This document shows positions 3,796-47,843 of a stretch of 64,000 nucleotides of DNA, in pieces. The notes beneath the pieces were generated by a model, which saw nothing but the letters and a program-made list of their open reading frames with translations, ran no database searches and was not told where the DNA came from. Source of the DNA: Podarcis bocagei (taxonomy: Eukaryota); NCBI GenBank assembly GCA_964188305.1, contig OZ076887.1. One strand, given 5' to 3'. Numbering within the stretch: position 1 is the first letter of the stretch; the number at the start of each line of letters is the position of its first letter. A program made the translations under genes and the position numbers.

Positions 3796-3931
3796 CAGGC
3801 TTCCTCAGTGTTGGCCCTCCAGATGTTTTTGGCCTCCAACACCCATAATCCCTAGCTAGCAGGACCAGTGGTCAGGGATGATGGGAACTGTAGTCTCAAA
3901 ACATCTGGAGGGCTGAGGTTAAGGAAGCCTG
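3796..3931. mobile_element. Palindromic hAT-type MITE
   Basis: TIRs CAGGCTTCCT...CCCTCCAGATGTTT / AAACATCTGGAGGG...AGGAAGCCTG; TSD GCTTAACT / GCCTAACT. Confidence 0.85.
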
Positions 3932-13135: not shown

Positions 13136-13596
13136 GGAATTAAATACATTTGTGAGCAATGCAAAAGCTTGTTAATAGTCCCCAAAAGCTGCTATATCTA
13201 AGTAAAAGCTTCTTCTGGACAGGACAATTTGCAGCAACAGAGAAGCAGTGAGTGGGGAAAGGGTTGTGGATCCATTTACACGTTTCCCATTGCTGCCTCC
13301 CAATTCTCTGCCCCAAATTGACATGTCTGAAAGGTGCATTTGATTACAAATAGTGGCTGATGGAGATCATTACACATCTTTGCATGGAATATTAAGTGAA
13401 GTTCTCAGATAGGTCCCTCTAGGTTACATCTTGCTACACTGCTATAATGTGTGTGTTTGGCAGAGGTGGACAGATAGATTCAATTTGTTAATGCTTTCCA
13501 TCACTTGCATGCCATTCAATCTAAAATTATTACTAGGGTTGTGCATGTCCCTGTCCCAATCCAATTAAGAGGATGATTAAGTAATTTGGATTGGGC

Positions 13597-13789
13597 CATA
13601 GGCACCAACTCCTAGTGGCCAAGGTCCCTTCATCCCCCCAATAAAATATTTGAGGGACTGCCCCCCCCAAAAAAAAATTGATGGGCATGGCCATTCAAAT
13701 GGTGTGTGCACACCACATCTTGTAATTGATTATGCAGGGTGGGGCTTGAGTCCCCCACCCCCAATATTTTATTCAAGTTGGCACCGCTG
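13597..13789. mobile_element. hAT-like MITE nested in left arm of the CHEK2-carrying element
   Basis: Imperfect TIRs CATAGGCACCAACT / AGTTGGCACCGCTG; 8-bp TSD GATTGGGC / GACTGGGA. Confidence 0.6.
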
Positions 13790-14259
13790 GACTGGGACCT
13801 AATTCAGTTCAGATCGACCCAGATCCAATTCAGACCCTGGATATGAATGACGATATGGAACTCCAAATCTGTTTTTCACATAAGTGCATTAAATTTGGAG
13901 ACATGGTAGCCCCTCAAGACGGAATTAATCCTGCCCAATTGCATACAAGTGGATCCGGGGATTTACATGCTAGCCACTTCTAAATTTTGTTGCTGCTGTT
14001 GTAAATACAAATAAAAACCTTCAGTTTACTGCTATTGTAAGTGCTCCAGTTTGGGCTGTTTCATAAAGTTGTAAAAAAAATGAAATCAATTGAATGGTGC
14101 AGCTGCATCTCCCAGGCAGCTAAGTCAAAGACAGACAGGCATGCCAGACAGGCTAGCATCTCCTAAGTGCAGACTTCGATTGTTGCACCAAAAGATGGGA
14201 AGGCAGAGGAGCAGTAGGGAACCGAGTCTGAGGAAGACAGTGTTGCCAGACAGGCACAG

Positions 14260-14975
14260 AAGTCCCTTTAACAGTGTGGACACTGTGCTTGTGTGAGACA
14301 CGGAAGTCTCCTGAGTTCAAAGTTGAAGAACTGCACTGAAAAGCAGTTAGGTGGGGTGGGGTGCAGCTACTGTGTACAATTTGAGGAACTGCTATGATCT
14401 AAAAGGTATGGTCAGTGAGTGGACTGGACAATTGCTGGCAAAACCAAGAGCATCCCTGTTAAGGGAGACTTTCTTCAGTGGAAAGGTCCTTGGGCACACA
14501 TCGATAAAGTCATACCCTCCTTGACTGCATTGTTCTCCGATGATCATCAGTAAGAGCATCCCTTAAGAGCTCAGGAACCAGTGTATCTTATCCAAAGATT
14601 CTTGGCAGTGTTGCATGTGGAGAAGTCAAGTCAGCTTTTGAAGACACCTGCAACAAAGGCTGCATGAATGAAATAAGTCAGTGAAGGTTTATGACAGAGG
14701 TTTCACCAGAGAATCAGGACAAGCCTTTTAATGTGGAAACACCCTGGAGATTTTGAAGAAGGTTGCCCATCCTTGCCTAATCAAGATAAAAAGACTTCTT
14801 TGAAGAAAAAGACTTTACATTCTCTTGGAATTTATGGAAGGCAAGAAGCTTGTTTGGCAAGGATCTGTGCCCATCAAGATTAAACGAAGTGACCTCCATG
14901 TTTTATTTCTATCAGATACGGTTGGCTATGCAATACCTTTATGAACTTGGCATTATTCACCGGAACTTGGAGCTG
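14260..14975 (+). pseudogene. CHEK2: Intronless decayed CHEK2 (Chk2 checkpoint kinase) copy
   Basis: Frameshift-corrected translation of 14539-14975: DD.Q*EHP.ELRNQCILSK/ILGSVACGEVKSAFEDTCNK...FNVET/EILKKVAHPCLIKIK/DFFEEKDF/ILLEFMEG../LFGK...RLNEVTSMFYFYQIRLAMQYLYELGIIHRNLE. This is collinear with CHEK2 ([61 protein letters not shown]). Weaker SQ/TQ-region and FHA traces at 14260-14520. Stops and frameshifts present. Confidence 0.85.
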
Positions 14976-15635
14976 GCACACCATGACATGACAAAGAGTC
15001 CAGCCCTGCTGCTTCACAGAAACTGGTCCCAGGCAGTCAGAAAAGGCAAAAGCACAGAGTCCATATGACATTGCTGAAATAGCAAGGAGAGTTGAGCCAT
15101 CACACTGAAATGCAGCAGAGGTGGTGGCAGAAGTGGCAGCAAGCCAGAAAGAGAAAGTATATGTGCGTGTTTATATATACTGACTGTGTATATTGTATAT
15201 GCAATATTACACTGTAATGTGTGCTGCTAAGAATGGACTGTGTCCAGTGTACTGGACTGTGTACAATGTACTCACAAGTCTAACTGAAACAAAAACGATA
15301 AGCAACTAATAAAGACAACCACAGAAAACAGGACACAGCAGTATATTTCCCCCCTCCACAAGCACATTCTTCCTTGCAAGCATTGTGGATGCACAATGTT
15401 GGGTGAGACCCTCAATGATCGAAGTCAAGCTCTTCTCCTCCCTCCTGGAATTTTCCTTAAATGGTGTTGTTTTCATGTTTTGCTACAATCTGGAGTCTGG
15501 CTTCTTTTGAGAGTATTTTGAGTTCCAGATTGCTCTGGATCAACTCAGGGCAACCCAGTCTGGATTTTGCATGAATTGTCTAAATTTAGTTTGGGAAACA
15601 AGATTTGACCAAATTGATTTGCACAACCCTAATAA

Positions 15636-15998
15636 GGGAAGCGGGTGGCGCTGTGGGTAAAACCTCAGTGCCTAGGACTTGCTGATCGTATGGTCAGCGG
15701 TTCGAATCCCCGTGGCGGGGTGAGCTCCCGTCGTTTGGTCCCAGCTCCTGCCCACCTAGCAGTTCAAAAGCACCCCTAAGTGCAAGTAGATAAATAGGTA
15801 CCGCTTTATAGCAGGAAGGTAAACGGCGTTTCCGTGTGCTGCGCTGGTGCTGGCTCGCCAGAGCAGCTTTGTCACGCTGGCCACGTGACCCGGAAGTGTC
15901 TTCGGACGGCGCCGGCTCCTGGCCTCTTAAGCGAGATGAGCGCGCAACCCTAGAGTCGGTCACGACTGGCCCATACGGGCAGGGGTACCTTTACCTTT
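15636..15998 (+). mobile_element. Sauria SINE (Squam1-type), full length
   Basis: tRNA-like head with A box (GGTGGCGCTGTGG) and B box (GGTTCGAATCC), Bov-B-like 3' end (GAGTCGGTCACGACT), (ACCTTT)n tail, short AATAA TSD; CpG-rich, so probably young. Confidence 0.9.
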
Positions 15999-16182
15999 AA
16001 TAATTACTAAACAAATATTAAGCTAGGTAATGATAACAGCACAAACAAAAGCAGCCTGCAGCAACACAAGAAAGAAGAGAGGGAAGGAAACATCTGCTTG
16101 CACCCATCTATTCCATTCTCTATATAACAATATATTGGTTGTAAATTGCTTTGAGTTGCCTTTGGCAAGAAAAAGTAACATT

Positions 16183-16184
<2 letters not shown>

Positions 16185-16253
<69 letters not shown>
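16185..16253. repeat. (AAT)23 microsatellite
   Basis: Perfect trinucleotide run; source of the poly-L and poly-I ORFs in the track. Confidence 0.97.
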
Positions 16254-16254
<1 letters not shown>

Positions 16255-18180
16255 TACTGTGACCATCATCCGTATATAGAGAGTTCAAATGCTAACCATT
16301 TTTTAAAATAAAACCTCCTCATAATTTCCATCCTTTTCCTTATAACTGAAAATTATGAACCTCCACTTCATATGCAAATAAGGGTGTTTGTTCTGCTGTT
16401 CTAGTAAAAACACATATTCTTTGGGGTGTGCAAATATTTTCATTCCTTCTCCTCGCCTTGCCCTCATTCCAGATGCTTAAAGTATTGGGTCACATAAAAT
16501 GCAGTAATTTCTAATGTGGCTATTGCAGTAAAGTGTTGTTTTTTTTTATGGGAGGGGGTCGCCGATACAGCTCCTTGCAAAGTGCACAAGGGAGCCTAGG
16601 TACACCTCTGAGTTCTGGAAGACGCTAGTAATCCATCTTGCTGCAACCCTCCACCTAAAATTAAGCCCTGGTGCGAAGGGCACGAGAAAGCATATAGCCA
16701 GCTACTTTTGCCTAGCTAGAACATAAGATGGGGGCTGTCTTTCATATAACCTGCTGGAATATCTTTTTACCTGAAAAGGTCATTTCCATCAGCAATGCCT
16801 GTTATTCAGAATGGCCCATTATTTTTCTCCAAGCTTTCTACTATTTCATTCTTTCTGGAAACAAGCCTGTGCTTGTCTCAAAGGTCTGTGCATTAATATA
16901 ATCCCAAAGCATGCTTTAAGGATTCACTGCACAACCCCAATACTTATGCTGGAAAGGACAAAGAACAGATTGCATTTTTAATGTGGTCATGCATGGAAAC
17001 ACTTTCGCCAAAATTAAATGGCTGCCATAGAAATGTATGGGTTGGATTTATGTTATCAAGTCCGGTTTATTATGGTTAATAAGGTGACCCTAAACTGACA
17101 CGTGACCAGTTATTCCCCTTACTCTTTTTCCAGTACACCAAAACCGCAGCATATTGAACAGTAGAATTCAAGACAATGTGCCCTTTTTATCTGGTGTCCT
17201 TTTTCTGCTAGCAGCTCACATGAGCCCAGGGGTCATCACTGTGTCTGAATGAACTACACAACTAGAACGGAAAACTGTAATCAGAATTAGACTGGAAACA
17301 AATACATTGAAGGGTAGCTGTTCCTAACCCAAGATTGCTAATAATCTTCACTTGGGATAATAATTCTCTTTATTTAAATGCTTTTCAACATATCCAATTA
17401 TGCTGTTACAGCCTGCATCTCGATGTTAGATGCAGATGCATGTGATCAAATCCAAGATTTTGCTTAGAATAGCAGCTTTGGGGTGCTGCTGTTTAGAAAG
17501 AGGATCAGCATAGGGGCTGATGAGCTCTTTCCCCATTTCCCTGCTCCATCCCCCAAGGGGATTTCAACCATCTCCTTCCCCACTCTCCACTGTCCCCAGG
17601 ATAATAGTGTGAAAGTATTTTCCATTTGACATGAGCATAAATCTAGTTCAACAATAAACACCACATCTACTTTATACTGTGGAAGGCAAATGACCGTGTA
17701 GCAGCAATTTGAGTTGGCATACTGTATTGCGTTGTGCCCATCACTTTACCAATAGACATTTTAACAGTTGTCCTTCAGGAACTAGCTTTGTCCTCTTCCC
17801 ATATTTTAATTGTGATATAACTTTTAACTCTTGCATCCATGTTTCCCCCCCCCCCTAGGAAACCTAAGTGAACACGGAGCACCTATCCAGGTATGACAAG
17901 CAACCTAATCATGTCTACTCAAAAGAGCCTCCTCTACACATGTGCAGAGTGTCTTCCCCCCACCCATTGTTTCCCCACCTCCACAATGACTGATCTTCTT
18001 AATACACTCAATTTTCCTTCTCCCTGTCTCTATTCTCCAGCCCCCACTATCCCCCCTTTAGCCTACTCTCACTAGTTTCCTTTTTAGGGGGTCCCCCAAA
18101 TTCTCATTAGGCCCCTGTTCCTTCATACATCCCATTCCCCCTTTCTCTCCCATTCTCACCCCCTTCCAGTAAGCCCTACT

Positions 18181-20145
18181 TGCCTGGACAAGGCATCTTC
18201 TCTCCCACAAAGCCAGACTCCCAGGACAACATTGATTTGGGTCAAAGCTAGCCACACCTTTATTGATTACAGATGTGGATGTTTGGCATAGTCTTCGGCA
18301 TAACCATTGAACCACCAGACCACCTGTTGGAGTATACCTATTTGGGAACAACCCAAGGCAAAGAGGGCTACGATCCACTTCTCCAGCTACAGCGAGGACC
18401 ATTTAGAGGTTGCGCCAGCTGGGAAAGGCCCTTGGAACTCAGTTCCTTTGTTGGGTCATGGCGCAGCGGGGGGGGGGGGAGGCGCTGTCCCACAATGCCA
18501 ACAAGGGGGAAAGGCAGGGAGGGGTGGGGAAGGTGAATCCCAGCATCAGAGGCAGCCTCCAAGTGGCAAAGGAAATGTTTCTCTCCAGGATAGCTCCCTG
18601 ATGCAGAGGCAGCAGCTTAGCTCCCAGCACCACAGGCTCCCTTGGCTCCCTTGTTCACTTCTCTCACACAACTCCTCCAAACCAGGGTGTCATGAACTGG
18701 CAGGACAAACATGAGGAGGAGGAGGAGCCCGGCAAGGGGTGTAGCCAAGACTGGGACACATTGGGGCAAGCTGGGCATGGGGGGGGAGAGGTTGGTATAG
18801 GAAGTACTCACAGGGTCACAGAGGATGGCAAAGGTCAGGGCACAGGAACCAGAGCTGCAGGACCCATCACCAGAGTCAGAGGGGCCCCTGTCTCCACAGA
18901 TATGGTGGGATCATGGAGATGAGCAGAAGGGGTGCCCTAGGAGAGTGAGGCAGGCAAGGGCTCACAGCCCAGTTCCTTAGCTGGCCAGGTGGGGCTCACT
19001 AGCCCTGGGAGGAGGGGTGTGATTCCTCAGCTGGAGTAGGCTTGGATCAGGTGAGGGTGCATATAATCAGCAAGCCAAGTTTAAAATGCAACAGAGCTGA
19101 GGTGCTGTGTTTGCTCAGCTGCCTGTTTTGATGAACCTGGACTTGGATGCTCCTGGACCTCCATGGGTTTGACTCTGGACTGTCTCCTGCCTGCTGGACT
19201 TCAGACTTAGCTACTTGGATTCACCCTGAACTTCATTTCCTGCCATTTGGACTTTGCTTGTGTAAATTGACCCCCAAACTTTCAACTTTGGACTTGGCAT
19301 ACTGACTTGCTGCCAGGTGGGCCAGGGGTTTAGGCCACAGGGCTGGCCAACCCATGAGGCAGTTGCCTCAGATTGGGGGACAGTTGGGAGGAATGGCAGA
19401 TCTTTGAGGAATGTGCTGTGCCGCTCGTTCCCATCTTCTCCTCCACTGCTGCCACATGCTTCTCTCTGGCTATTTTTCTCCCCTACCAAGGCAGCTTTGG
19501 AGTTGGGGGTGGGGAGGTGGCTTTGGCAGCCGGCAGCGACTTTGGCAGTGGCAGCAAAGCCTCTCAGTCTGGCCCTGCTCCAAACCTATTTTCTCACAGC
19601 TTCTTCTACCCTCAACACTACCATTTATCCACCATCACCACCACCCCCGTTGCCAATCACTACCTCACAGTTGCCCCCTCCCCACAACTTGCCCCAATCT
19701 GCTGCTTTTGGAGGAGAGGCGAATGAAGTGGAAGAAGTCTCTCTCCCTTTGACCCTGCTCTGCTGCCCACATCCTTCTGTCAGTGGCACAGAATGAAGAG
19801 GAGAAAAACTATCCCCTCTTCATCCCCTTCTCCTCTGTGAGTGACAGCCTGTGGAATCTTAGGACTGGGCCAAACTGTGAGGAGATGGGGCAGTGCAGAA
19901 AGCCCTGCAGGCCTGGCTAAGCAGGTCACTCGTGTCCTCACTCCTCCTGACCGCTTCATCAGTTGGGCCGCCCACCCATTTAGACCTGGGAGGGGAAGGG
20001 CTTTCCTGCGTCCCACAGGCATGACTCCACAACCTGCCTCTGCGTCGGGACACACCAGTTGAAGGCCTACAAATGAGGTCGTTTCATCTTCCCAAGTACT
20101 GGATCCTTTAAACTGCATTTAACCACAGAGGTGTTAGGCATGACA
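18181..20145. mobile_element. GC-rich degenerate LTR-like region (probably two nested solo LTR-like elements in opposite orientation)
   Basis: TGTCATG LTR-like starts at 18688 (+) and 20145 (-); TATA-like CATATAAT near 19061 (+); AATAAAGGTGTGGC near 18260 (-). No TSD and no gag/pol recognisable. Confidence 0.4.
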
Positions 20146-22341: not shown

Positions 22342-25300
22342 ATTGTTAAACCACTATTGGAACAGTAGTTCTGGGAGAGGGTCTCCTAACAGCTCTCAGC
22401 ACCCTTAACAAACTACAGTTCCTAGAATTATTTAGTGGAAAATTGTGATTACTTAAAATACCATAGGAGTGCCTTGAATGTACAATGCAGATGTGACCTT
22501 AGCTGCAGTTGCCATTCTGGGCAGATCTGCACTGAAACCATTTCACCAGTTGTTTAGGTTTTCTCTGTCCATTAGAACAGGGGACCTTCCAGAGGACAGA
22601 TGTGGTACATGTCTTTGCTTGAATTCAATTTCTGACTGCGGAATTGAGTCCAGGCTGTTCCTTAAAAAGCTTGATGTGAGGTTGATGGCTGAAAAGATAA
22701 GCTCTTTTTCTCCGCCTGCTACTCATCTGCAGCACCAAAATGTAAAAAGTCTGAACTTTTAGCAAAAGGTGCCGATACACAGTTTGTGGCGTCTCATAAA
22801 GGCTATTCTCCATAATGGGCTTTACAAAAATCCTACTCAGAGGGGTTTTTTTTGCCACCTTCTAAATAATCAGTTATTTCGGCTGTTATCTAGCACTTGC
22901 AGGTCTCCTGAACCACAACAGCAGCATTGTGGTAAGCAAAAAATATCTTAGTTGCCAGGAGAGCTTTCCTCCTGGGAGATGTTCATTTTGAACTGTGGGG
23001 CAGTTATTTGCATTGCATATGTTGACACTGGTTTAAGCTTTGAAGGATATTTGGGAGTCATTTTTATTTACAGCTTATTTTTTTTCACATATTAATGTTT
23101 CTGCTATCCTAGACAAAGGGTCCAACTCTGCAGAGTGAATGCCAACGCAGGCCCCAGCCAGGAGCCATTTTTTAAGCACCCTGGTATAGAAAAATCACAT
23201 GGTACCATCCTGTGGGCATTTGCTTCTTTGTGTGGTGAGAAGCACAGCACAGCAACCCTAATGGTGGATGGTTTCAGACTTCTGAGTCCAGTTCAAGAAC
23301 TGGGGTGGAACACTATGAGCAACCTTCTCCCCCCATCAAAACAGAATCAGAGCCATTTCAAAGTGGATCAGCCAAACAGCAGAAAGTGTTATTTTAAGCC
23401 CCCCCAATCCCCCCCCCCCAGTTTAGGCACAATAGTAAATTTTAGCCCAAGAAGGTTGTTCTGAGTCGTCTTTGCCACAAATATTAGATGCAGAAAGGAA
23501 TGCTTATTTCCCTCTCCCCATCGCCTCTGCCACTGTGAAACAAACAAAAATAAAAAAATAGCCTCACAACATCCGCTGTAATAAGTTCAGAAGGAAATAT
23601 ATTGGCTTGTGCAAATGAATGGCAGACATCAAGGCGAAAAGTAATTTTCTATTCTTTTGAAGATGGTTGCCAAAGTAAGCAGGGTGGGAACTACCAGCAG
23701 AAGTGTTGTCTGGCCAAGCCTCTTTAAGATATACCAGTCTTGCCAGACGGAAAACGAACAGCAGCAAAAAATAATACCTTCCCCCCTTACCAAAGAACCC
23801 CTTACAATTCATTTTAAAATGTGCAGCTTCTGGTTTCTCCTTGACAGGAAGAATTGTGAACAGGAAGATTTTTTTAAAATCCCACAAAATAATTTTTCTC
23901 CCCAGGAAGAGAAATCCCCTTCATCTTTTTAACAAAAGCTTGAGAGAGGATTTTTGAAGAGGGAAGACTTCAGTGAGGGTGGGGGAGTGGGGGAGTCAGG
24001 TGTAAATAACAGCATCTAGAGAAACATCACTGATGAATAATTTAAGTATTAAGACAAGAGGCGACAGGAATGATTTCATGGTGAGTTCTGAGGATCGAAA
24101 ATGTAACAGCAATGCAGTGAGTTATTAGCCCCACATGCCTTGTAGTTGTCTGTTTTCTATGCACAGTACCCAATCAGTGCATCAGCAGTGACATTCTATA
24201 ATGGCATTCTTTCTGCCTTTCAGTCATGCAGTAAAAAGCCCCATTGCTTAAGCCCTGGTTGCTACACAAAATGGAAGCATCTCATCTCTGCCTTTTATCA
24301 GAAGGCTTAGCTTTAGTTGCAGAGAGTGACATTTACTAGCCTTGCACAAGGGATTAGGATTCTTGTTTGTCTGGCAGTGCTGAGAATCATCCTAAATGCT
24401 CTGCATGCCAGATCATACTTTGTATCTGGGATCAATTCCACTAATCAACAGCACGAACCAAAATGTCAATCTTTTTCTGACCCACTGAACATGGAATATT
24501 AGCATATTGCCCTCTGAAAATATCCCCCTGCCTTTTTCTCCGTAGATGGGAATGGACCACAAAGACTCAAGATTTAAAGCGGTGGGGGGAAGGGAAGGGA
24601 AGAGCCTATTTGAATACAGCACCAGAATGTGTGGGTGCTTTTCAGGTAGGGTGAAATATAAAGGCCTGGTCTAACTTAATGATCTGGAAGCACAATACCT
24701 CCACATATCAGATCCTTGGCGGAGAGTTCACCTTGATCTAGCCTGCTAGACGTCTGATTTACAGCTCTGCACCAGACTGGAGCTAATCACTGGGGGCAGG
24801 ATGGCAAAGTGAAGCACATAAACAATGACTTTAAAATAAAACAAAATGCTAAAGAGGCTGGGAAGATTGAGCAGGATCTTTACAGAAAATCTGTTGGTTG
24901 CTTGTTTATCAAGAATCCAGTGCTAAAGGCAGCAGTAATGAAATGGGACTGGAATATTAATCTTTCGTTGAGCAGCTCCTTCGGATGATTCAGGCATATT
25001 AGAATCCTTTAATTAATTTTATTGGAACACAAACACTGAGGCGTGCATACATGTTTCAGCAAACGGTGAAAAAACATTGAGAACGATCCATTTCTAATTT
25101 GGATGTTACATTTTCCAACAATCAATGCAATTAGTGATTGCCCCCTGGATAAGCTGCAGCAAAATATGTCATTTTTCTTTTTTATACGTCTTTCCTACAG
25201 CCTTTGAATGCTGAAAAACAAAACAGCAGCAAGTCCTGGTGAAAATAGCTTGAGCACTGCCATCCCTTACTCCTAATTTTCTTATTGATCCGACCACAGC

Positions 25301-30191: not shown

Positions 30192-30324
30192 TAAGGTTAC
30201 CAGACATCCCCATTTCCCAGGGACAGTCCCCAGATTTACAAATCAGTCACCTGACAAAACCCATCTATTTAGTAGGAAGTTGAAAAGTGTCCCCGGATTC
30301 ACTGAAAAAAATCTGGTAACCTTA
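30192..30324. mobile_element. hAT (Blackjack-like) MITE
   Basis: Perfect TIRs TAAGGTTACCAGA / TCTGGTAACCTTA; TSD TTGTAACT / TTTTAACT; GTCCCC subterminal repeats. Confidence 0.85.
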
Positions 30325-40540: not shown

Positions 40541-41299
40541 TAAGGAAAAATATATATTCTGACCACCTAAATTAGTTACCAGAACATGCAAAGCACTGAC
40601 ATAGTTACCATTCATTCAATGACCATTCATTCAGCTTTGAATTAACTCAGGTTTGCCAAAAGCTCATTTCTAGTTCTGAAATTCTTCACTGAGTTTTCTG
40701 AGTTAATACAGCCACTACACTTATGAGGAGACACTTTAGCTGAGATTTGTGCATTGCAGGGGCTTAGATTAAATGACCCCTGTGGTCCCTTCCAACTCTA
40801 CAATTCTGGTTCTAATAAAAGGCAGCTACTGTTTCTGCAGAGTAATGTAAAGCTTAGAAATAAACAAATCTATAGGTTAAAAATGTTAAGAACAGCCCTG
40901 CTGGATCAGATAAAAAAATCAATCTAGTCCAGCATTCTGTTCCAACAGGGTTCAGCCAAATCTCCTTGGAAATATCACAAGCAAAGTATTTTGCTCAAAG
41001 TCCATTAAGGATATGGCATTCTGTAAAAGAGAATGACATATCAAGATCAGGCTCATCACCAATTCCCAGTGAACAAACAAGGAAGAATCTATTTCATATA
41101 CATTTGGCATATGCATTTGTCTTCTTTAAAGAATTACAGAAAGGATATTTTCCTTTGTCACTAAGTAAAGCTACGAAGAAAACAGACTGAAAACAAACAC
41201 ATATTCAAAGAATAATTTGTTAAGTTTTTCTAAAAACTTGACATCAAATCTTCAACACTGTTCTATTATTCTAAGTCATGAAGATAAAGAAGAAATTAC

Positions 41300-45843: not shown

Positions 45844-47704
45844 CTAAACCAAAAAAAAAAAAAAAAAGTTTAACTTAACTAGAAGCTATACTCATTTTCA
45901 TTTACTTATTTCATTACGGAAAAGAGCACACCAGACATTAATGTGAGTGATTTGTAGCCAATTGGCAGAAGCCTTAATCCACATCATATTCATAGGCAAT
46001 CTATACTGGGAAAACATGTCTGCAGCTGTTTCTTTCTTTTAAACCTTGCTACTTTATTTAAGATGCATAACATTACACATAAAATAATAATCTGAATACA
46101 GAGAGCTCATGGAAGGGCTTGATACAAACCCAACAATATTTGTGACTCCTTCTTCCAACAGCTGAACTCCATCACCACCACCCATGGCACATCATAAACT
46201 GCATTTGAAAGTCCCTCATTCCCAGATTAAACAGTTTTCCATGTGGCTTAGATGGCTGGTCTTCAAAAGAAAGCACTCTAAAGGCCCCTTGGGTTCGCGG
46301 TACTAGTTTAACGGTTCTTTGAATCCTCGCCTGACCTTTCTCTCCATATAAAGCACAGTCTGCCACTTAAATGAGACCGCTGGTTAATTTCTGCGTGAAA
46401 TGTATAATGGATTAAGGCACTGATTTGACAAAATTATGCTCTTTCTGTTAAAGATGCTGCAACTGCATGCAAAAAATGATGTAGTTACTCAGATATTGCT
46501 GTTCCACCAATGTAAACAAATAATCCCAAACCTTCCTTATGCCCAGCTCCAACCAAAGTTGTTGGTGGTTTTGCTGGGGACGTAGGAGCTGGGTGTGAAG
46601 CCTCAAGCTAGGTGCAGGAAGGTACAAAAAAGTATATTAAATACACATCAGACTACATGTTCCCAACCACAACTGGCGCCATTACAGCAAGACCAGGATG
46701 CATAAAAGGAACGTAACGTGCAACATAAAAATGAGTAAAACAGAATTTTTGAACCTGTACCTGGTACTTTCCATGACTATCTATCTGCATCTGCTTGCAA
46801 ATCCTATTTGCCTTTTTAAAATTGTGTGAGTGTCTTCTCATCAAGGCAAGGTAGCAAATAGAACAGAAATAATGGCACAACAGTATTGTACAAGCATTTG
46901 CACATTTAAAATGTTAAAACAAATGGGCTGCCCTACAATTATAATATGTGCCAGCCTAGTGAAAGCATAGGTGTGGCGTGTATTTATATTTTTATATAAA
47001 AAATATAGAGCAAGAATGGCTAACCTTTCTGGGCCTGAGGGCTACAGTTAACCTTGAACAACCCCCTGAAAGCTGCATACCAGCAGTGCATGTGATCAAA
47101 AGTGTGTGTAGCCATCTCACTCCCTTGCACACGCACACGAACACACATGCATATCCATTGATACTAGACATTTTTAGTATAAAAACTTATTAAATTCTTC
47201 CACAAAGCATTCTGCTTTGCTTCAGGCTTCCATTTGCACCCCACTGTTCACAGCTTAAGTCAGCTTTAAAATGCACATTATGTTGATTTAGATTATTATT
47301 CATTCTAGGAAGATCAAATAAAGCATATACAATGGAAATATGTTGATAGTTTAAATAAATGAATGAAACATTAGTGGTTCAAGAGCAAGGAAGAAGATTA
47401 CTAGGTCTCAGTTGAATTAATATAGAATTATTAAAGCATCTGTTAATAGTATTTTGGTAAAAATATAGTGTTCAGAGCTTGGTTACTCATACTAGAACAG
47501 CTTACTACAAAAATAATAGTATGTACTATAAAGATGTTTTTAAAATATCTGATACTCCTGTTACTGCACTTCCTATGAGGAATGGCTTGAGGGAAGCAAT
47601 GGCTTCCTGTTACCTTACCATGTAGAATTCACACTGTCGTTCATGACTTTAAAAGCCCTAAAGGGCAGAGGCCTGGCTGATTTAATGAATCAAGGTGAGC
47701 ACAG

Positions 47705-47843
47705 ATTCAAAGAACTGTAGTGTTGGAAGGGAACATGAGGGTCATCTAGTCCAATTCCCTGCAATGCAGGAATATTTTGCCCAATGTGGAGCTCAAACCC
47801 ACGATCCTGAGATTAATAGTCTCATGCTCTACCGAATGAGCTA
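47705..47843 (-). mobile_element. tRNA-Lys-derived SINE with CR1-like 3' tail (lacertid-type)
   Basis: Reverse complement TAGCTCATTCGGTAGAGCATGAGACTATTAATCTCAGGATCGTGGGTTTGAGCTCCACATTGGGC resembles tRNA-Lys(CTT) and continues into TTCCTGCATTGCAGGG...GGACTAGATGACCCTC...CCCTTCCAAC. Partial copy at ~40745-40808 (+). Confidence 0.85.

Follow-up and report, generated by a model that had tools for sequence, protein, structure and literature searches.

A putative non-autonomous hAT element with a spliced and decayed CHEK2 fragment in the lizard Podarcis bocagei

A 64,000-nucleotide stretch of the Podarcis bocagei genome (contig OZ076887.1, assembly GCA_964188305.1), referred to in the following as the window, contains a 2,098-bp element at positions 13534–15631 (plus strand). 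The element is bounded by a pair of terminal inverted repeats (TIRs) and a target-site duplication (TSD), and holds between them a piece of CHEK2, the gene for the checkpoint kinase Chk2. Our favored explanation, which we regard as probable, is that this is a dead non-autonomous hAT transposon and that part of its filler DNA comes from an old processed CHEK2 pseudogene, of which a fragment was taken up at the DNA level. The CHEK2 piece, referred to in the following as the cargo, is best read as neither a fresh retrocopy nor a working modulator of the checkpoint.

Ends of the element and its hAT class

The TIRs are 12 bp long, within the range of about 10–25 bp that is usual in hAT elements, and identical at 12 of 12 positions. 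The left repeat, TAGGGTTGTGCA, lies at 13534–13545 on the plus strand and starts with TAGGG, fitting the pattern YARNG. The right repeat, at 15620–15631 on the minus strand and reading TGCACAACCCTA on the plus strand, is its exact reverse complement. These are the only two exact occurrences of TAGGGTTGTGCA in the window. Next to the left repeat, an 8-bp TSD copy, ATTATTAC, can be read directly at 13526–13533. The right TSD copy is split by a short interspersed element (SINE): its first half, ATAA, lies at 15632–15635, and the full copy is read as ATAATTAC at 16000–16007, after the SINE, where the ATAA repeated by the SINE insertion is followed by TTAC. When 15636–16003 is removed, the restored junction reads CCCTA directly followed by ATAATTAC, which matches the left flank at 7 of 8 positions. 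Both copies fit the target pattern nTnnnnAn, with T at position 2 and A at position 7; this pattern and the terminal motif YARNG are hAT hallmarks in lizard elements (PMC3014272).

The other long open pieces on either strand of the element gave no Pfam match, leaving no transposase remnant, and a self-BLAST of the window found no second copy of the element. Because it has an 8-bp TSD, a YARNG terminus and no transposase, 13534–15631 is, as judged from its sequence, a non-autonomous hAT element. An earlier note on the window had described the perfect TIRs, an 8-bp TSD that becomes visible once a SINE of the Sauria type is removed, and the lack of a transposase. All of these were borne out, the TSD at 7 of 8 positions.

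To estimate how often such ends would arise by chance, we ran first-order Markov simulations of the window and counted inverted pairs within 5 kb. Perfect 12-bp pairs numbered 290 in the window and about 41 in the simulations. When an adjacent 8-bp duplication with at least 7 of 8 matches was also required, 0.075 pairs were expected per window. If YARNG and nTnnnnAn are demanded as well, the chance expectation falls, by our own arithmetic, to about 1e-4 to 1e-3.

The SINE occupies 15636–15998 (363 bp, plus strand). Its tail, ACCTTTACCTTT, ends at 15998 and contains (ACCTTT)2, and the insertion is flanked by TAATAA on one side and (T)AATAA on the other. The 5' copy of this short target duplication is thus made up of the first half of the right hAT TSD, ATAA, together with the TA that precedes it. 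Sauria SINEs carry an (ACCTTT)n 3' tail and a short target duplication beginning with T (PMC13295347), and the tail and T-first duplication found here agree with the Sauria assignment. The tail and TSD of the SINE fix its two boundaries independently. A SINE copy in a Lacerta agilis locus (L001, positions 653–969, described below) shares 77% identity with it. Neither ARAGORN nor Rfam called a tRNA in the head of the SINE, even at E ≤ 1. The SINE retains 28 CpGs with an observed/expected ratio of 0.87, compared to 0.16 in the hAT element, and is therefore young. It inserted into an older hAT element, landing after that element had arrived.

The CHEK2 cargo

The cargo lies at 14458–14976 on the plus strand. 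It is 519 bp long, with robust similarity from 14539 and weaker similarity at 14458–14538, and comprises the end of the FHA domain, the linker and the N-lobe of the kinase domain up to the catalytic loop, HRDLKL. It takes up about a quarter of the element (519 of 2,098 bp), and so does not fill the middle, as had been claimed. A phmmer search with a 72-codon open piece of the cargo returned only odd multi-kinase models, the best of which (P0001) was a stick-insect Chk2/lok fused to a potassium channel. P0001 served only as a stepping stone to squamate Chk2 proteins, which matched 14595–14975 by tblastn with E-values of 1e-30 to 1e-34. Identity in the tblastn matches was 41% to Anolis Chk2, as against 47–52% elsewhere. 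Among solved structures, the best matches to the 72-codon open reading frame (ORF) were all Chk2, with the match ending at HRDLK.

A frameshift-aware alignment with affine penalties placed Elgaria Chk2 residues 137–322 on 14458–14975, with 104 of 168 positions identical (62%). A stricter frameshift-tolerant run covered residues 178–322, with 93 identities in 144 positions. In the affine alignment, the reading frame of the cargo is interrupted by two in-frame stop codons, at 14551 and 14682, and by about eight frameshifts, and three small deletions remove 15 residues. No open piece of the cargo exceeds 92 codons. Nothing is left of the N-terminal SQ/TQ region, the activation loop or the C-lobe, and the FHA domain is mostly gone. 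The earlier note had presented the element as a Pack-hAT that had captured CHEK2. The non-autonomous hAT type and the host-derived CHEK2 inside it stand; a working kinase does not, the cargo being an internal fragment with two stops and about eight frameshifts. Upstream of ≈14458, no CHEK2 similarity rose above shuffled controls at either the protein or the DNA level. For this reason we rejected the idea that the cargo represents the 5' part of the mRNA from its start codon, perhaps with one exon skipped.

The cargo was compared to intron-bearing CHEK2 sequences from Tiliqua scincoides (L002), Phrynocephalus forsythii (L003) and Protobothrops mucrosquamatus (L004). The Tiliqua locus, which lies between HSCB and TTC28, is the true CHEK2 locus. 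By blastn, the cargo matched five separate Tiliqua exons, which are 0.3–1 kb apart in the gene and adjoin one another in the cargo. On the Phrynocephalus exon map, the cargo starts within exon 3 and stops in exon 9, after 46 of its 96 nt. Pieces of seven exons thus adjoin, and six junctions are crossed, five of them cleanly and one within a small deletion. Both breakpoints fall in the middle of an exon, one within the FHA domain and the other within the catalytic-loop exon.

At the cargo borders, inspection by eye showed neither an A-run nor direct repeats, and no listed repeat brackets the cargo. To the right of 14976, we found no further CHEK2, no mRNA 3' end and no similarity to a 3' untranslated region; an AATAAA at 15308–15313 stands alone, without a poly-A run. 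The sequence that follows the 3' breakpoint does not duplicate what precedes it. The right-hand interior of the element, 14977–15619, which runs into the right subterminal region, is unlike the CHEK2 exons or flanks in L001–L004 and contains no Pfam domain. Comparison also showed that 14977–15400 is neither another piece of CHEK2 nor a repeat of the upstream part. The cargo is thus a spliced, broken, internal fragment of CHEK2.

In the left part of the element, 13600–13790 is palindromic, with inverted repeats, C8 and G-runs, and arms AATAAAATATT and AATATTTTATT. The nested miniature inverted-repeat transposable element (MITE) that the earlier note had placed at about 13600–13790 appears to be no more than this palindromic stretch: neither a TSD nor, in the window or in loci L001–L004, another copy was found for it.

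Origin of the cargo and an intronless CHEK2 copy in Lacerta agilis

In a protein tree, a read-through translation of the cargo fell inside Squamata with 100/100 support, establishing its squamate origin, without resolution within the group. Its end branch was 0.64, compared to a median of 0.053, or about 12 times as long. A DNA tree gave the cargo a branch of 0.31, compared to 0.08–0.20 for the Tiliqua, Phrynocephalus and Protobothrops genes and the Lacerta agilis copy described below. If the corresponding 0.11–0.23 extra substitutions per site are neutral decay, the joint probability over the same time that all 24 TIR bases would remain intact with at most one change in the 16 TSD bases is 0.0005–0.03. 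Because the cargo is far more decayed than the TIRs and TSD, the comparison suggests that the CHEK2 fragment had long been a pseudogene by the time this copy of the element inserted.

A Lacerta agilis protein annotated as "Chk2-like" (P0134) is encoded for the most part by one uninterrupted stretch at 22787–23782 of locus L001 (CM020425.1). This stretch has an open frame of 323 codons that begins where the kinase domain does and continues to the C-terminus; it lacks the FHA domain and is 85% identical to Elgaria Chk2. The P0134 model itself is chimeric: its first coding exon (MTEEEEEE...) falls within a repeat, and two short exons lie 16 kb downstream. The Lacerta copy, whose kinase frame is intact, may be a retrogene. 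Both it and the cargo are intronless CHEK2 sequences of squamate origin. They differ in that the Lacerta frame is open and has no hAT ends around it, none having been found there, whereas the cargo is internal, broken and enclosed in a hAT element. The Lacerta copy shows only that squamates possess a donor of the kind required.

By raw DNA distance, the Lacerta copy is the nearest to the cargo, with a Kimura two-parameter distance of 0.34 compared to 0.40–0.45, and the two have a pair of residues in common (EE and CP). We nevertheless claim no common origin, as no shared derived sites link them: the pairing has just two informative DNA sites in its favor, and the two sequences are not united in the tree. 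We also considered whether the window is syntenic with the Lacerta "Chk2-like" locus, since two other stretches match between them. One of these matches several places in the window and the other is a gappy 71% match; with no other collinear match, both were judged to be interspersed repeats. The gappy match is a GC-rich stretch of 0.65 kb at 18688–19333, which aligns with many gaps to L001 9875–10532, the site of the first "Chk2-like" exon.

Searches for further copies

An exact-product look-up with the 72-codon ORF gave no match, and a homologue search with it gave no candidate. A profile built from squamate Chk2 segments and the window pieces, searched against 5.8 billion proteins, retrieved only real or partial Chk2, none with the cargo junction. 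The element ends were used in two metagenome scans, the first of which gave zero matches and the second two chance 20-mers without further similarity.

Other features of the window

A 133-bp hAT-like MITE lies at 30192–30324, with perfect 13-bp TIRs (TAAGGTTACCAGA) and an 8-bp duplication matching at 7 of 8 positions (TTGTAACT and TTTTAACT). Its ends resemble those of the 2,098-bp element only in TARGGTT (TAAGGTT in the MITE and TAGGGTT in the element), with no further similarity. Just to the right of the element, at 16421–16939, an imperfect TIR-like inverted pair is found, consisting of TTGGGGTGTGCA and the reverse complement TGGGGTTGTGCA, 0.5 kb apart. It lacks matching 8-bp flanks and is either a relic of great age or due to chance. 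About 180 bp to the right of the element, 16185–16255 is a long (AAT)n microsatellite.

Several other repeats recur at the Lacerta locus. A palindromic MITE at 3813–3920 is 88% identical to L001 24028–24135, where the MITE copy has inverted arms of 59 nt with 97% complementarity (24016–24153). A tRNA-related, SINE-like repeat at 47703–47843, which also occurs at 40743–40820, is similar to several places in the Lacerta locus and includes a 37-bit Rfam tRNA match on the minus strand at 47786–47843.

Discussion

We propose that a hobo-like, non-autonomous hAT element gained filler DNA, and that this filler included a ragged fragment of an old processed, RNA-derived squamate CHEK2 pseudogene. Uptake would have occurred at the DNA level, either as a genomic block or by template switching during double-strand-break repair. 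A hAT transposase, an enzyme with a BED finger, a DDE region and a hAT dimerization domain, could then, acting in trans and recognizing the TAGGGTTGTGCA ends, have cut and pasted the element into its present site, generating the 8-bp duplication, and the Sauria SINE would have landed in the right-hand copy of that duplication later. Whether the cargo came in with this transposition or was copied into a resident element by gap repair is a close question, in which we lean slightly toward the former. The proposal is supported by the occurrence of an intronless CHEK2 copy in squamates and by the habit of lizard hobo-type hAT elements of taking in foreign DNA.

Several points weigh against this explanation. 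Only one copy has been seen, the one in the window, and the explanation does not account for the remaining ≈1.5 kb of the interior. hAT elements carry short subterminal repeats to which the transposase binds; here, the subterminal motif ATCCA/TGGAT occurs six times where 1.0 is expected (p = 7e-4), but this value is uncorrected for 511 tests; TCCAGA/TCTGGA likewise clusters near both ends (p about 7e-4) and is not significant after multiple-test correction. The age argument is biased, because the element was noticed for its perfect ends, and it uses a rough estimate of neutral decay that was made without the host's own CHEK2.

The alternative that survives best is that a long interspersed element (LINE) retroposed a CHEK2 mRNA into a resident hAT element, and that later deletions removed the 5' part, the 3' part and the poly-A. 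The cargo is indeed spliced, squamates do make CHEK2 retrocopies, as the intronless Lacerta copy without hAT ends illustrates, and the AATAAA lies about 330 bp downstream of the cargo. The same ambiguity has been stated for the ARF6 retrogene inside MER20 (Tan et al. 2021, PMC8277862). On the other hand, a poly-A and a TSD belonging to the CHEK2 sequence itself, which the earlier note had named as the signs of a retrocopy fallen into a hAT remnant, were looked for at the cargo borders and none was seen, and the sequence beyond the breakpoint is unlike the downstream CHEK2 exons or flanks in three squamates. Retroposition into a resident element would also make the TIRs and TSD older than the cargo, yet it is the cargo that is much more decayed. 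Because there is no poly-A or mRNA 3' end, both breakpoints are in the middle of exons and the decay of the cargo exceeds that of the ends, we disfavor direct retroposition and consider it unlikely, though the only one of the alternatives with an appreciable chance of being right.

Much less probable is a still recognizable multi-copy hAT family with this spliced CHEK2 fragment present at many loci. In its strongest form, younger copies would encode or transcribe a truncated FHA-kinase piece, or antisense or small RNAs, that would interfere with the Chk2 damage checkpoint set off by transposition. Slightly less probable again is a mobile Pack-hAT family in which selection retains, or once retained, the CHEK2 cargo, for instance as a truncated FHA-kinase decoy dampening the DNA-damage checkpoint while the element transposes. 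That the cargo seems older than the insertion would fit its transport by transposition. However, of the FHA domain the cargo keeps just the final strands, and of the kinase domain half, ending before the activation loop, its frame is broken into pieces of at most 92 codons, there is no evidence of a promoter or start, and the search of 5.8 billion proteins revealed no short Chk2-like protein with the cargo junction. The earlier suggestion that the cargo was selected to modulate the host response thus finds no support at this copy, where the branch length far exceeds that of every real CHEK2; its sequence gives no sign of a working or selected cargo, and the fragment presumably has no function now.

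Equally improbable is that chance produced the inverted pair and the 7/8 "duplication" and that the CHEK2 piece is an old processed-pseudogene fragment in intergenic DNA: perfect 12-bp inverted pairs are common in the window, the subterminal motifs do not survive correction and the TSD emerged only when the SINE was removed by eye, but the adjacent duplication and the hAT motifs make a chance origin of the ends rare, hAT copies number in the tens of thousands per lizard genome (PMC3014272), and the boundaries of the SINE do not depend on those of the hAT element.

We thus return to the explanation of a dead hAT element with an old pseudogene fragment in its filler, for which there are several precedents. 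In plants, Pack-MULEs and gene-fragment Ds elements are non-autonomous TIR elements that pick up fragments of host genes (summarized in PMC8277862 and PMC3260210); these captures are usually genomic, with introns, and often multi-copy and transcribed. MULEs belong to a superfamily other than hAT. In animals, Tan et al. (2021) described 370 Pack-TIRs in 100 genomes, 208 of them hAT elements (PMC8277862). Like the element described here, these are TIR-bounded, non-autonomous DNA transposons with a piece of a host gene between the TIRs; they are mostly single-copy, short and non-coding, and were ascribed to template switching or gap filling (PMC8277862). The present cargo differs in being spliced, and so has its source in a processed copy or a cDNA and not in the parent gene with its introns, and in its length of 519 bp, compared to a median of 224 bp (PMC8277862).

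In lizards, Novick et al. (2010) found that hobo-type hAT elements routinely incorporate foreign genomic DNA, with older repeats inside (PMC3014272). The Anolis carolinensis elements hobo_AC and hobo-N1 to hobo-N15 resemble our element in having 11–12-bp TIRs that start with TAGG.TTG, a length of about 2 kb, interiors of foreign genomic DNA and an 8-bp TSD of the type NTANNTAN, which is fitted by the right copy, ATAATTAC (PMC3014272). The TIR diverges after position 8, reading TAGGGTTGTGCA here and TAGGCTTGMTC or TAGGCTTGAGC in Anolis, and no host coding sequence was reported in the Anolis families (PMC3014272). In light of these two studies, the view that vertebrate reports of gene capture by TIR elements are rare is out of date. 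That hAT elements capture genes is on record for animals, lizards among them, and the element described here is an ordinary case of filler DNA, made mildly unusual by a captured piece that is RNA-derived.

The element would matter much more if the same cargo, or an open frame, existed in many copies, although nothing here suggests that it does; a multi-copy family bearing CHEK2 would mean that vertebrate DNA transposons can pick up and spread RNA-derived gene pieces. As it stands, the element adds one vertebrate example of the capture of an RNA-derived piece, and bears on how Pack-TIRs form, whether by uptake of an existing retrocopy or by template switching.

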